A stretch of DNA of 64,000 nucleotides, taken from the NCBI GenBank assembly GCA_038496445.1, contig JALMLS010000062.1, positions 434,001 to 498,000 on the forward strand, read 5' to 3'. Of this stretch, positions 22,532-39,589 are shown one piece after another. Origin of the DNA: Trichosphaerium sp. ATCC 40318. Taxonomy: Eukaryota > Protista > Tubulinea. The translations under genes were made by a program, and so were the position numbers. Below the pieces are notes generated by a model that made no database searches, was not told the origin of the DNA, and saw nothing but the letters and a program-made list of their open reading frames with translations. Position 1 is the first letter of the stretch; each line of letters begins with the position of its first letter.

Positions 22532-23824
22532 TTAATAGTGCGTATAAAATATTTTAGATTTCTGCAAGGCTTTTAGGTCTTTTATGCATTGGTTTGTCAC
22601 CTTCTTACAATACCGAATTTCAATGTCATCAACATTTACAAGTGCCTTGATGCTCTCATCTGTTATTTGAGTACACATCAGCAATTTGATTGTATGAACG
22701 CCTTTGAGGGCTTTGATTGCTTCATCTGTAACCTGTGTAGAGTACTTCAGGGTTATAGTATGAACACCTCCTAGAGCTTTAATACCATTGTCAGTTACTT
22801 GATCACATGCGCACAAGGTAATCAAATGTACATTTGAAAGTGCTTTTATACCTCTATCTGTTATGTTGTGACAACGTTCCAAGATGATAGAATGAACACC
22901 TTTCAATGATTTGATGCCTTTGTCAGTTAATTGCGTGCAGTGTGCTAATGTAATTTTATGAACACCTTCAAGTGATTTGAAGCCTTCATCTGTTATTTGA
23001 TCACATAATGTAATACTAATGGTATGTACTCCCCTGAGTGCTTTTACACCTTCATCTGTTATTGAAATACTCCATAGGTGTATCGTATGGACTCCTTTTA
23101 GCGCTTTAACACCCTCATCTGTTACCCCACAGAGTATTAGGCTGATTGTATGAACTCCAGCAAGTGCTTTTACACCTTTGTCAGTTATTGAATTGTTGTT
23201 GAGGTAAATTGTATGAACTCCAGCAAGTACTTTGACACTTTTATCTGTTATTTTAATACATCTTCTTAAGTTAATAGTATGAACGCCAGCAAGTGCTTTG
23301 ACACCTTTATCTGTTATTTTAATACATCTTCCTAAGTTAATAGCATGAACGCCAGCAAGTGCTTTGACACCTTTATCTGTTATTTTACATCCTTCTAACG
23401 TAATAGTGTGAACGCCTTTTAGTGCCATGATACCTTTGTCTGTTACTTTTTGACAGTCTTCCAAACTGATTGTATGAACCCCTTTGAGAGCCTTGATACT
23501 CTTGTCTGTTACAGTTGTATCACGCAGTATAATATCATGAACTCCTATGAGATACTTGTAGTTATTATTAAATCTTGCTTGTGGACCAATTCTAATCTTT
23601 TTTGTTTTTATTAATTTCGGTGCTTGCTTCCACAGTCTCTTCAGCTCTTTCGGATTATTTATTCTTATTGTTGTGCGCTTATATCCAAGGTAGTTTGTTG
23701 CTATTTTAAAGAACAGAGCACATGTTTCAACCACAGATTGAAGAGAGGACGCAGGAATAAAGCGTAAAACAAGTACTATTATCTCCACAGGCAAGTAATC
23801 TATAAATCGGATATTTGCGTTCAT
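22532..23824 (-). CDS. Intronless F-box + Cys-containing leucine-rich-repeat protein
   Basis: FIDYLPVEIIVLVLRFI F-box, then about 13 repeats of GVHTIxLxxCxxITDxGxKAL. Confidence 0.9.
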   Translation of the reverse strand: MNANIRFIDYLPVEIIVLVLRFIPASSLQSVVETCALFFKIATNYLGYKRTTIRINNPKELKRLWKQAPKLIKTKKIRIGPQARFNNNYKYLIGVHDIILRDTTVTDKSIKALKGVHTISLEDCQKVTDKGIMALKGVHTITLEGCKITDKGVKALAGVHAINLGRCIKITDKGVKALAGVHTINLRRCIKITDKSVKVLAGVHTIYLNNNSITDKGVKALAGVHTISLILCGVTDEGVKALKGVHTIHLWSISITDEGVKALRGVHTISITLCDQITDEGFKSLEGVHKITLAHCTQLTDKGIKSLKGVHSIILERCHNITDRGIKALSNVHLITLCACDQVTDNGIKALGGVHTITLKYSTQVTDEAIKALKGVHTIKLLMCTQITDESIKALVNVDDIEIRYCKKVTNQCIKDLKALQKSKIFYTHY

Positions 23825-30607: not shown

Positions 30608-33600
30608 CTAAACTTCAGAGCCTCTATCAAGAGTGTGTACGTTCCAACGGTGAGCATTGCTACCAGGTGCTCTTGGTCTACAACCATTGCAGCACTCAAT
30701 TTTTCTCATACAGTAGCATCTTACAGCAAATACACCATTGTATTCAAGCGTAGTATAGTCTTGAGTATAGATCTCATCAGAGCACTCAGGATCTTTGGAA
30801 GCAGCTACTGCGCAATCATTTCCAAAGTGTCGGTTGTGATAAGGTGAAGCACGTCCTCTAATTAGTACTTCTTTCTTGCAATCCCTCCATGTTTCTCCAG
30901 GGCAATCGTGATGTCTTGTTCCTCCTCCAAGGTTTATGTAGGTTCCATGTCCATCGCAATAGACTCCGGCTTGTTTCAAGACGAGCTTTGGTGGGTTGAA
31001 AAGAGGTGTATCTGTTTTAGGTTCCAAATCACAGTTCCTGCAGTCGTTTGTCATTGGCCATTTAGGTACGCGTGTTACGTTTTTGTTTAAGTTTACAGCA
31101 TCGCAAGAGATACATTCATCGCCGTGTCTCCAAGGGATATCTTGATGTTGTGGAGGCGATACATAGCCTGGGAAGAGACGACCTGATCCTTTAATGTAGC
31201 ACGTGGAGTGGTATGCTGGATCTCCAGGAAGTACAACTTCTTCAAGTCCAAAGGTCTCGGATGGTATACGTCCTCGCACATTAAAGCACACGTCAACGTT
31301 TTTAGGGTCTTCTCCAAGATCTACTACGTCATCTACGCAGATTTGTGGGAGGAGATCAGCTTCAGCGTTGTATTGGTTCTCTAAGATTTCTCTTGGCATG
31401 ACAATGTATGCGTTACATCCACGCCTGATATCACATAATCTAGCACAAACATCGGCATTGTTATAGATTCTAAAGCAATCTAAATATGATGTGGTTAGCA
31501 GGCAACAGACATGAGTGCAAATACAGTTTTTCTCAAACAATTTTGCTTCTAAGATCTTTTACGTACCATAAACGTCACGACGAGCAGGTAAGTAACAGTG
31601 ATCAATACGACTTGAAAAAACAGTTAGCGCACGTGATTCAAGAAAGAAAAATTAAAAAACACGTGTTACGTACACGAATCCACCCTCAGGGTTTTCAAGT
31701 CCATAAATGTGTTCAATTTGTCTATTAACAAAGTCTATATCAATACAGTCTCTGTATCCTCTCCACAGCCATTGAGCAACATATGATCCGAACTCAGCAC
31801 CGGCTGGCATTGTAAGCTTAACCATATCAGCATCAGCAGGCCTATGTGCCCAATGTTCGAACTTGAAGATACCAAGAACGAAATCCAAGTCAGTGTTTGT
31901 GTATTCGCAATAGTTCTTTACTTCGAGATCATCTTTGTATCCAAATAGTTTTGCATTATCTGCCCAACCACCGAAAGATTCTGGTCTAGGAATGAAATTC
32001 GGAGAAGAAGGAAGGATCTCGCCGCTGTAGAATTCCTCATGAGGTATAAAGTCATCAGAACGAGCTCCAAGCCGTCTGTGGTAAACAGGCAAGTTTTTAC
32101 AAGCTCCATCAGGTGCGTCCTCGAAGTAGGCATCCATAGCGGTGAAAGAAACTTCTTTAAGTCTAGCTTCATCCTCGGCTTTGACAATGACATAGTATGA
32201 AGGTTGAGTGTGACCAACTGCCCATTCAATCTCAAACTCTTGACCAGGACCGACCTGAACATTTGGAGAAGAATGTCTTCTTGGTGGGCAAGGTGTGGTT
32301 GTACTGGCGATATCCTTACTTCTGGACCCACTTGTCCCCCAATTGTGGGCGTTAATCGAAGGGAAGGAGACCAAAGCAATAAGGAAGACAGCCAAGATTA
32401 GTGTTGGCATCTTTCCATTTAGACGCATTGTTAAACCCAAAATAGCAAGAGCCATGATTAAGAAAGAAGCTGTCGATTTCGAAGCAGGTGAGGTATTTGA
32501 TCCTCTAGCTGCAATTACGGTGTCTTCAGGTTCGGCTGGAGGATTAGTGGTTGCAAGACACTTGCACATGCGAAGTCTAAAAAAAGTCAGTAAATATAAT
32601 AAAACCATGTGAAAAAAGAAAGAGCGTTATTGACACATACCCGATGGTGGTATCACCACTTCTGGAATCACAAGTAACAGCTCCTGTGCTACGTCCTTGA
32701 TCGCCGCATCTTGTGTCGTCATAGTAGCATAGGCCGTCAGTACCCATTGTAGCTCCTTTGTTGTTGCATCCGCTTACAAAAGGAAGTTTACAAGGGAAGC
32801 TTTGTGGAATAATGAGTTCTTCAATTTTTAATGGACTGTTGATGCTCTCCATGGAAACACGATCACATAAGAGGTTCTCTTGAGCACATCTAGCGGTACA
32901 AGATTGACCTAACTACAAAGAGATTGTTAACGCAAATCGAAAAAGAAAAAAAGTTGAACAATACTCACGTTTGATTGGAACCATGTTTGAACTGGTTTGG
33001 TTTTAGAAGATTCTTTAAGTGTTAATGGGCCATCTGCGCCATTTGGCCAGTAAAAGGCGCCAGTATTGGCATCGCCTTGCTTGATTAGGCAATGGAAAGT
33101 GACACTTCCGGTTCCTTTTGCTGGAGCCTTCCATTTCCATGTTGACTTGAGAGGCTTGAGTTCAGCGCTCTGGTGTGTAATACTCTGGCGACACTCGTGT
33201 GTATTAGGCCAAGGTAATTGAAAGAATGCTACAAAAAAAAGTCAACACGTGAACAACAAGCACAAAAAAAGCAAAAAAAAAACAAAGTCAGAAAATGTAA
33301 CGTCAACAAACAAAAAAATGATAACAACAAACAATTCATAATAAAATTTGTGAACACCGTACGGTTTGATTCATCAGGTAAAAGCCATTCACCAACTCTG
33401 TTACCATCCTCATCTTGAGCGTATATGAGAATACCGCGGTATTTGAAGGCATAGTTGTTGACACGAATGCTAATGTCCATAACCATGTCTGGAACATATT
33501 CGTTCTGTTTATCGTCTTCTGGACCAGCCCATGTGCTGTATGCACTACTACGAACCACTTTTGTAGCCCAAGACATACGAGGTTCTGGATCCGTTCTACA

Positions 33601-33759
33601 AGTAAGCCTGTCGACTCTTCCGTTTCCGAAAACTCTGTAATCTTCTGGAGGACAACCCCATTCAGATGAAGAGGCGTCACAATTCGGTACAGATTCTGTT
33701 GGCCTCGAAGCGCCATAAACAGTCACAATGAGAGCAACCAAGAAGAAAGTTACCCGCAT
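30608..33759 (-). CDS. Large secreted/membrane protein: signal peptide - Reeler domain - Cys-rich region - TM - internal signal peptide - His-initiated LPMO-like domain - Cys-rich C-terminal region
   Basis: Exons join in frame via GT-AG introns. Reeler: YRGILIYAQDEDGNRVGEW..WKAPAKGTGSVTFHC. Two hydrophobic segments around RLNGK; HNW..EWAVGH..QWLWRGYRDCIDI. Confidence 0.75.
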
Positions 33760-34724
33760 TTTCTACAGGGAAGTTTAGATCAAATGAAACCTTATTGTTA
33801 TGTCACGTGATGAGGAGAAAAGTAAAACAGAACATGTATTTACCTGAGTTAAAGTAATATTAAAGTAATATTCACTTGTTGCCACAGGTGTTTGTGTTAG
33901 AATACACTGAAAAATTTGACGAGTTTTTCAGCTAGCGGTGAGTCATTACCGCGGTACCGCTAGTGCTGCATAAAATACACAACAAAGCCGTACAGAACAT
34001 AGCAACACTATCGTTTGTAACGAAAGGGAAACACTCCTAAAATAATATGTGAACCACGTGATACGAAAAGGGCCTATACCTGTACCCTGCTCAAGCATAG
34101 ATGTCCCAATAAAAATAACACGTGAACAACACTTAACTTTTTACTCTCAATGCGAACGATCTGCACATATGAAAATGTCAACCACAAGTTACACGGAAAG
34201 TTCCAGAGAATGAAAAGGTAAAATTACGCTATTTTTATATGACGCAAAATTACGATTTCGCGGTTTTAACAATCATCCTCTACGTAGATAATGTAAACTA
34301 ACAACTAGCGCCTCAAATATTATGTGCATTGTACCGAACATACCGCAACTACACTTTGCCGATACTTTCGGCCACTACTTTTTTTGCACTTTTTGTAAAG
34401 TTCATGTAATTACAAAAAAAGTATATACTGCTGTATAATCACTGTTTCGGGTTGTGCAAATGCCTTTTCAGTTGACATACAGTGTCGGACAAAAGAATTT
34501 TCCTGGCGTCATATTTTAGTTGATACCTGCTAGCTGTTAAAATAAAGCAACTATTCTATTGTCAACTGTATGCTTGCAAGGGAAGAACAAAAACGATCAC
34601 AACAAATAGGATTACCAAGGCTTGTTTATCGATTATCTTCTTAGCCGGTCGACACTTTCACCTAGTTAAAGCATACTAAAACTCCACAAAAGTACAGACT
34701 TGTGTGAAAAAAACTGTGTCTATT

Positions 34725-38310: not shown

Positions 38311-39589
38311 ATGGAGTCAACTACACAGTTTATTGATTACTTTCCTATGGAGGTTATAGTACTTATTTTACACTTTATACCAACGCCCTCTCTTCAATCG
38401 GTTGTTCAAACATGTACTCTTTTCATTACCATCGCAAGAAATACAGATAGGTGATTCAAAACAGCTAAAGAGGCTATGGACTGAGGCACCAGAATTCATT
38501 AAAACAAAATGTATCATTATATACCCACGTGCAAGGTTTAACGACTACTACAAGCATTTCAAAGGGGTTCATAATATTAAATTCGTAGGATATTCTTCAT
38601 TAAAAGACAAGAGCATCAAAGCACTCAAAGGCGTTCATACGATCCACTTGGCAGGGTGTCACCAAATAACAGATGCTGGTGTTAAAGCACTCACAGGTGT
38701 CCATACTATTAACCTAAAAGAGTGTATTAAGATAACAGATAAATGTATGAAGTCGCTCGCAGGTGTTCATAGTATTGTCCTCTCACGTACCAAAATAACA
38801 GACAAAGGTATCAAAGAACTGAAAAACGTTCATACTATCGATTTGCATGACTGTAAAAGTATAACAGACGAAGGTATTAAAGCACTAAAAGGAGTACATA
38901 ACATCAACTTAATGGCGTGTAAACAAATAACAGATGAAGCTGTTAAAGCTCTTGAAGGCGTCCATACCATCAACTTAGTGTACTGTATGAAAGTAACAGA
39001 TGAGGGCCTTAAAGCGTTGAAAGGAGTTCACACCATACACCTTAACAGCAACTCAATAACAGACGATGGTATAGCATCTCTCAAAGGTGTCCACACCATT
39101 ACTTTGGGTGAACAATGTGATCAAATATCAGATAAAACCATCAAAGCTCTGAAAGGTGTTCATAAGATTAAGCTATCATCGTGCAAGCAAATAACTGATA
39201 AAGGCATCATGTCATTAAAAGGTGTCCATACTATAAGCTTGGAGCGTTGTGACACAATAACAGATAGAGGTATAAAAGCACTTAAGGGCGCACATAAGAT
39301 TACCTTGTATAATTGTAAACAAATAACGGATATTGGTATCAAGGCACTAAAAGGTGTTCACGCAATCACCTTGAAAGACTTACAAATAACAGATGAAGGT
39401 GTGAAAGCCCTAAACAGCGTACACACGATTAAATTGAAGATGTGTGGCAGAATATCAGATGAGGGCATCAAAGCACTGATACATGTTGACAATATTGAAA
39501 TTTTCTATTGTCAACATGTTACAGAACAAGGCATCAAAGAGCTTAAAAAAGCTTCACAAAGACCTAACCTAGTTTTATCGTACTATTAA
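38311..39589 (+). pseudogene. F-box/LRR paralog of 22532-23824 with a frameshifting deletion after the F-box
   Basis: ATG 38311 gives MESTTQFIDYFPMEVIVLILHFI..CTLF, with a stop at 38454. The LRR array continues in another frame, and about 25 nt are missing relative to the paralog. Confidence 0.8.

Follow-up and report, generated by a model that had tools for sequence, protein, structure and literature searches.

In a 64,000-nt stretch of contig JALMLS010000062.1 of Trichosphaerium sp. ATCC 40318 (the window, meaning this whole stretch), a minus-strand gene probably encodes one precursor that is cut internally by signal peptidase into a Reeler-domain protein and a copper histidine-brace protein beginning at its own first histidine, a reading to which we give a probability of about 0.62. 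Proteins of the lytic polysaccharide monooxygenase (LPMO) type are thought to be confined to the position directly behind an N-terminal signal peptide, because the amino group of the first histidine itself binds copper. The LPMO-like domain described here, designated the HNW domain after its first residues, sits in the middle of a 915-aa chain, directly behind a second segment resembling a signal peptide. If this segment is cut as predicted, the HNW family represents a second and repeatedly used solution to the constraint on the N-terminal histidine, namely a signal peptide placed inside a polyprotein of cellular origin.

The N-terminal signal peptide would carry the Reeler domain and the Cys-rich region behind it into the lumen of the endoplasmic reticulum (ER), where a first hydrophobic segment (H1) would halt the transfer and leave a short loop with Lys or Arg in the cytosol. 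A second hydrophobic segment (H2), oriented as a signal peptide, would then restart translocation, and ER signal peptidase would cut after SINA. The predicted products are a Reeler-domain protein that H1 keeps at the membrane, perhaps trimmed further, and a soluble, released protein which starts at His387 and consists of the LPMO-like domain and a Cys-rich tail. In the latter, the free amino terminus of the first histidine (His1 in domain numbering) and His46 would form the copper histidine brace, with Tyr198 in the axial position. Membrane anchoring of the Reeler half is plausible, and its anchor could be the hairpin of H1 and H2, a single span remaining after the action of signal-peptide peptidase, or glycosylphosphatidylinositol (GPI).

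Gene structure and transcript

The frame of the gene (Table 1) contains a lone terminal stop, TAG at 30608-30610, and is disrupted by alternative donor choices. All five coding introns are matched exactly by spliced contigs from two sequencing runs of the same organism (joints 33228>33363, 32912>32969, 32576>32641, 31610>31674 and 31479>31567); these contigs are without introns and are therefore cDNA. H1, the loop, H2 and the histidine-started domain all lie within exon 4, and there are zero stops between the two halves. One contig of 1494 nt (record 2 of run X1) spans the whole series from exon 3 to exon 6, and another (record 8 of run X2) joins exons 3 and 4. Since the contigs span exons 3, 4 and 6, both halves are on one spliced message: a single spliced mRNA carries both halves of the precursor. 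An earlier note on this DNA, made from the letters alone, had proposed a single spliced frame of about 900 aa and a single transcript; the six exons, the cDNA joints at every coding intron and the spliced contigs spanning both halves bear out both proposals.

The protein has three hydrophobic segments only, at residues 1-16, 346-360 (H1) and 368-381 (H2). Its parts follow one another as the earlier note had them, and at the same places: signal peptide, Reeler domain, Cys-rich region, hydrophobic segment, basic RLNGK, second signal-like segment and histidine. With only the exon 1 piece as query, the Reeler profile PF02014 reaches 16.4 bits against a Pfam cutoff of 21, the score falling below the cutoff because an intron divides the domain. 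The same profile passes the Pfam threshold in three full-length relatives (P0002, P0003 and P0006; 30-36 bits), which align with the window protein across the whole N-terminal half. The first Cys-rich region was assigned to no family in a Pfam search of the window pieces. Among 82 relatives, the 15 residues preceding H1 are 59% small (S 20%, A 13%, G 9%).

Table 1. Features of the gene in the window (positions in the 64,000-nt stretch; residue numbers are those of the precursor unless stated otherwise)
Feature	Position	Strand	Remarks
Coding part of gene	30608..33759	-	six GT-AG exons; one clean 915-aa frame
Exons	33759-33363, 33228-32969, 32912-32641, 32576-31674, 31610-31567, 31479-30608	-	
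5' untranslated intron	33763..33843	-	81 nt, GT-AG; joint 33762>33844 (CT..AC on + strand) in runs X1, X2, X3
N-terminal signal peptide	33712..33759	-	residues 1-16; likely cut after VYG (-3 Val, -1 Gly)
Reeler-type domain	33026..33510	-	residues 84-200, approximately; intron 1 (33229-33362) falls within it
Cys-rich region 1	32501..32980	-	residues 216-335; 10 Cys
Ser/Thr/Ala-rich stalk	32471..32500	-	directly before H1; resembles omega/spacer part of a GPI signal
H1, presumed stop-transfer	32426..32470	-	residues 346-360; first hydrophobic segment
Basic loop RLNGKMP, presumed cytosolic	32405..32425	-	
H2, internal signal-peptide-like	32348..32404	-	h-core 368-381; c-region PSINA (-3 Ile, -1 Ala)
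His387, His1 of LPMO-like domain, predicted new N-terminus	32345..32347	-	homology begins here; follows SINA
HNW domain, LPMO-like beta-sandwich	31676..32347	-	224 aa
His46 of domain (EWAVGH), candidate second brace His	32210..32212	-	invariant in 86 sequences
Late strand YVAQWLWRGYRDCIDI	31736-31783	-	
Tyr198 of domain (WRGYRDC), candidate axial tyrosine	31754..31756	-	at least 90% conserved; assignment by position only
C-terminal Cys-rich region	30611..31675	-	305 aa, 22 Cys; introns 31611-31673, 31480-31566

Two layouts in one family

A full HMMER search of public data with the 224-aa histidine-started domain as query found 349 relatives of the domain, of which 159 reach E<=1e-10. Among the 150 best relatives, 132 are matched from the first query residue (HNW) onwards. 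The domain stands directly after an ordinary N-terminal signal peptide in about 34 relatives. In 89 others it is internal, mostly at residue 300-500, and always preceded by H1, a short polar or basic loop and H2. Full-length relatives can be aligned with the window protein from one end to the other (P0004 over residues 1-896, E 1e-134), and several of them are single Trinity/MMETSP transcripts, from Flabellula baltica, Rhizamoeba saxonica and one MMETSP culture; other relatives are found on mRNA-sized environmental contigs, and the acantharian Phyllostaurus is the source of one cluster of the N-terminal type.

When 86 domains are placed on a maximum-likelihood tree, switches between the internal and the N-terminal layout number at least 10. 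At least six of these changes are forced by branches with support of at least 95 in the Shimodaira-Hasegawa-like approximate likelihood ratio test (SH-aLRT), and two pairs of sisters at 100% support (P0024/P0056 and P0101/P0135) each combine an internal with an N-terminal form. The layout of membrane segment, loop, signal and histidine that the earlier note proposed to look for in homologues is thus not peculiar to the window gene, being present in the 89 relatives and interchanging with ordinary N-terminal signal peptides. Given the repeated switching, the junction before the histidine is interchangeable with a true signal-peptide junction, as would be expected if both layouts require the histidine to end up as the N-terminal residue.

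The internal signal-peptide-like junction

The H1 core has a family median of 14 residues (interquartile range 11-16). The loop behind it has a median length of 7 residues and a mean net charge of +1.67, and contains Lys or Arg in 80 of 82 relatives; under the positive-inside rule, a basic loop of this kind fits a cytosolic turn. The h-core of H2 (median 13.5 residues) is close in length to that of the family's true N-terminal signal peptides (median 13), and its c-region comprises about 4 residues. Cleavable signal peptides are characterised by a short h-region, a helix breaker and small residues at -1 and -3. By these established rules H2 is predicted to be a signal sequence of the cleavable kind.

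The residues around the predicted cut are strongly constrained across the family. The internal forms have His at +1 in 88 of 89 cases, and the -1 position is filled by Ala (75), Gly (9) or Ser (5). At -3 the counts are Ala 38, Val 23, Ser 9, Thr 8, Cys 7, Gly 3 and Ile 1, and all 89 satisfy the -3/-1 rule. The N-terminal-type forms display the same -3/-1 pattern, with His at +1 in 33 of 34. Recurrence of the histidine junction in 89 divergent relatives lies far beyond chance.

One difference between the two kinds of signal was observed. Pro or Gly at -4 to -7 is much commoner in the internal forms (69/88) than in the N-terminal signal peptides (8/29), and may be needed for the cut to occur in a hairpin context.

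The LPMO-like domain and the C-terminal region

Trp3 and His46 are invariant in the 86 aligned domains, and at least 90% conservation is seen at His1, Asn2, Arg9, Gly45, Trp195, Gly197, Tyr198, Asp200 and Asp203. An AlphaFold run with the 86-sequence alignment of the domain returned a beta-sandwich with helical insertions at a predicted local distance difference test (pLDDT) score of 91.6 and a predicted template-modelling (pTM) score of 0.88; a single-sequence model with a pLDDT of 40 was discarded. An exhaustive VIA search with the domain model placed AA15 first (PDB 5msz; Z 7.9, root-mean-square deviation 2.5 A, 116 residues, 21% identity) and X325 second (PDB 6ibh; Z 7.6, 126 residues, 10% identity), and several PDB entries of AA9, AA10, AA11, AA13 and AA16 followed at Z 5.8-6.3 (5.3-6.6 when a second structural look is included). 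Residue 1 of the model is aligned to the mature His1 in every LPMO match, and identity in the LPMO matches is 13-25%, against 4-12% in most of the others. In the second structural look, about 30 of the 50 matches were LPMOs, again aligned from His1.

Taken alone, the evidence from the predicted fold is moderate. It becomes weightier because of the residue conservation, the known AA15 copper site and the PF03067-labelled neighbours in the ESM Atlas, where the nearest language-model and structure neighbours are haptophyte clusters with PF03067 in 13-23% of their members. Counted back from the end of the aligned core, the candidate axial Tyr198 stands at a distance of 11 residues, like Tyr184 of the AA15 protein TdAA15A, a correspondence by position only. 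A profile search of a 5.8-billion set gave 16 matches, none of them labelled by Pfam. On the strength of its predicted fold and its key residues, the HNW domain appears to be an unclassified LPMO relative, nearest to AA15 and AA10 and outside every existing sequence family.

For this part of the chain, too, the earlier note is largely borne out. The second histidine was located in EWAVGH where the note had read it, the predicted fold is LPMO-like with residue 1 on the LPMO His1, and both histidines are conserved in homologues. The late strand at which it had the chain end is present, but the chain continues beyond it into a further Cys-rich region. Its interpretation is supported overall, and each of its refuting conditions covered by the analysis turned out favourably; cleavage, adjacency of the two histidines, copper binding and oxidative activity are what we infer from these data.

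Three relatives (P0049, P0108 and P0111) have Asp in place of the first histidine (DNW), and it is possible that these members are non-copper or degenerate forms.

The C-terminal Cys-rich region of the window protein is without a hydrophobic tail, and such a tail is present in 1 of 79 internal-type relatives. A Pfam search of the region gave no family. Its nearest language-model neighbours (for 30611-31477) are PAN/apple clusters, a weak resemblance (score 0.90, 135-143 shared features). The region could serve the released protein as a binding module.

Alternative explanations

Several findings weigh against internal cleavage into a Reeler protein and a copper protein. Cleavage and topology are predictions from sequence, and with a median of 14 residues the H1 cores are short if they are to cross a membrane. 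The -3 residue of the window copy, Ile, is permitted though uncommon, and the family's Pro7 is missing from this copy. Foldseek against the PDB returned weak, mixed beta-sandwich matches with a template-modelling (TM) score of about 0.3, and the Z scores of the structural search do not exceed 7.9, values below 8 being common for beta-sandwiches according to the search tool. A Pfam search of the window domain gave no family; among the 86 relatives, Pfam gave zero matches to the AA10/AA15 family PF03067 and a single one to AA9 (PF03443) at E 0.006, below any cutoff. The family profile found nothing among PDB sequences up to E 10. Finally, the Logan contigs reveal no transcript starts, and an additional shorter transcript is compatible with them.

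These points bear differently on the readings that compete with internal cleavage. Two hydrophobic segments around a basic loop look like a helical hairpin, and if H1 and H2 formed a stable two-helix hairpin in the membrane, the product would be one uncleaved surface chain in which the HNW domain serves as a binding module with no brace. The moderate fold scores, and a cut read from the sequence only, are in keeping with such a chain. The H2 cores, however, have the length of signal peptides rather than of membrane spans, and a -3/-1 site followed by His is retained in all of the internal forms. The relatives with the domain behind an ordinary signal peptide, and the repeated swaps between layouts, are hard to explain by an uncleaved hairpin, in which the junction residue would not have to become an N-terminus, and we consider this explanation improbable. 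The spliced contigs that cross the junction in two runs, together with the full-length single transcripts of other species, argue against separate messages or starts. In that case an ordinary signal-peptide-histidine protein would arise from an internal promoter or from a translation start at Met367 (MPTLIL...), and the long frame would be incidental. It is true that H2 of the window copy begins with Met and that transcript starts are not visible in the contigs; yet a Met 15-30 residues upstream of the histidine occurs in 30 of 89 relatives, against 26% by chance, and is not conserved, whereas the layout of H1, loop and H2 is, unlike a mere spacer. Such an origin of the second protein is very improbable.

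It is also conceivable that the cut occurs and the domain is not a copper brace, its histidines serving another metal, the structure or the binding of a ligand, as is the case in LPMO-like proteins without catalytic activity. The absence of sequence membership in any AA family, the structural match to the copper-binding non-LPMO X325, as good as that to AA15, and the replacement of His1 by Asp in the DNW relatives would all agree with this. Nevertheless, the best-conserved histidines are residue 1 and a loop histidine after Gly, and with the conserved Tyr on the penultimate strand they would make up the triad of LPMOs, while the LPMOs in the second structural look are aligned from the first histidine; we find this explanation quite unlikely. 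A variant of internal cleavage concerns the fate of H1, which could be a GPI signal. Signal peptidase would cut after H2 and GPI transamidase before H1, so that the Reeler protein would receive a GPI anchor and the LPMO-like protein would be secreted. The shortness of H1 and the small residues before it, similar to an omega site and spacer, speak for this variant, and GPI anchors are frequent in LPMOs and in X325 proteins (PMC8615602). Against it, H1 is not C-terminal in the precursor, being followed by the loop with Lys or Arg, which is a stop-transfer feature, by H2 and by 529 more residues, so that it could act as a GPI signal only after processing. Moreover, a search for stand-alone N-terminal halves ending at H1 gave only fragments and one doubtful genomic model. 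We regard the GPI variant as rather unlikely, and retain internal cleavage, with H1 as stop-transfer segment, as the preferred reading.

Relation to known systems

AA15 proteins occur in eukaryotes, protists included, and the copper site of TdAA15A consists of His1, His91 and Tyr184 (PMC5823890). TdAA15A (5msz) resembles the HNW domain in its His1, second loop His and, by position, its late Tyr, and the two are aligned from His1 to the last strand. The HNW domain differs from AA15 and AA10 by the position of the second histidine (46 rather than about 91), by helical insertions between residues 57 and 130, and by Asn at position 2 and an invariant Trp at position 3; most HNW members are also found mid-protein and not directly after an N-terminal signal peptide. 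The start of AA10 proteins, which we take to be His, a small, an aromatic and an aliphatic residue and then Pro-x-Ser-Arg, resembles HNW..PSR. LaX325 (6ibh) is similar to the HNW domain in that the structural match is aligned from residue 1. X325 is a membrane-associated histidine-brace protein with no polysaccharide cleavage, and provides an example of a non-LPMO outcome. According to PMC8615602, X325 proteins are GPI-anchored at their C-terminus, whereas the HNW-domain product of the window gene is without a hydrophobic C-terminus.

The proposed processing has its closest counterparts in viral polyproteins. In the structural regions of flaviviruses and hepaciviruses and in the glycoprotein precursors of bunyaviruses, host signal peptidase cuts an internal signal following a stop-transfer segment (see the reviews PMC7926653 and PMC4974537). 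At the hepacivirus core, signal-peptide peptidase then trims the leftover signal peptide (see PMC4857398), which would be a possible fate for H2 as well. The window gene shares with these systems a presumed stop-transfer segment, a predicted internal signal and, as we infer, the production of two proteins from one chain. It differs in that it belongs to a cellular protist family, and in the proposed creation of a catalytic N-terminal residue, which is absent in the viral cases. A cellular polyprotein split by signal peptidase at an internal signal is presumably represented by the Bradyrhizobium fbcH cytochrome b-c1 precursor; this precursor, as we understand it, differs from the window gene in that it belongs to a bacterial respiratory complex and has no histidine brace.

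Full-text literature searches found no paper in which LPMOs are connected with either an internal signal peptide or a Reeler domain, and no description of the HNW family was found in the literature on LPMOs in Amoebozoa or Rhizaria or on LPMOs as a new family. If the proposed cleavage and brace are correct, the HNW proteins would constitute a new family of LPMO-like type, from amoebae and marine protists that have been little studied, and a rare non-viral case in which signal peptidase divides a single chain into two functional proteins. They would also imply that annotation pipelines overlook histidine-brace domains situated away from the N-terminus. The obligatory 1:1 co-production with a Reeler surface protein would suggest that the two proteins act as a functional pair, an idea open to direct test. 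A tentative extension, which we hold to be possible though doubtful, is that LPMO-like copper proteins form the second polyprotein half throughout a protist family of new AA type, the internal signal peptide being selected for creating the catalytic histidine, and that the equimolar, membrane-held and possibly GPI-anchored Reeler partner works with the enzyme, for instance in docking, substrate presentation or electron relay at the cell surface.

Transcript variants and neighbouring genes

The intron in the 5' untranslated region, seen in three runs, lies three bases upstream of the ATG. Two further joints, 31156>31853 and 31779>33201, are non-canonical with 30-letter sides and were set aside as chimeras or contigs of paralogues. 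A deeper contig present in both cDNA runs (depth 163 in X1) has the joint 33228>33370 with 7 other letters between the two sides, and displays 8 mismatches across 33370-33462 (window 33229-33462). This contig probably represents a highly expressed paralogue or a divergent allele, and not an alternative splice form. In run X1, a G>T difference on the plus strand at position 32422 replaces the Leu of the loop by Ile (RINGK instead of RLNGK), and about 20 further single-base differences separate the runs from the window, which suggests strain or allele variation. Inside the 64-kb window, tblastn detected no paralogues of the gene. The flanking long single-exon open reading frames, at 22532-23824 on the minus strand and 38402-39589 on the plus strand, encode RNI-type leucine-rich-repeat proteins that match PF13516 (LRR_6) at E about 1e-25.

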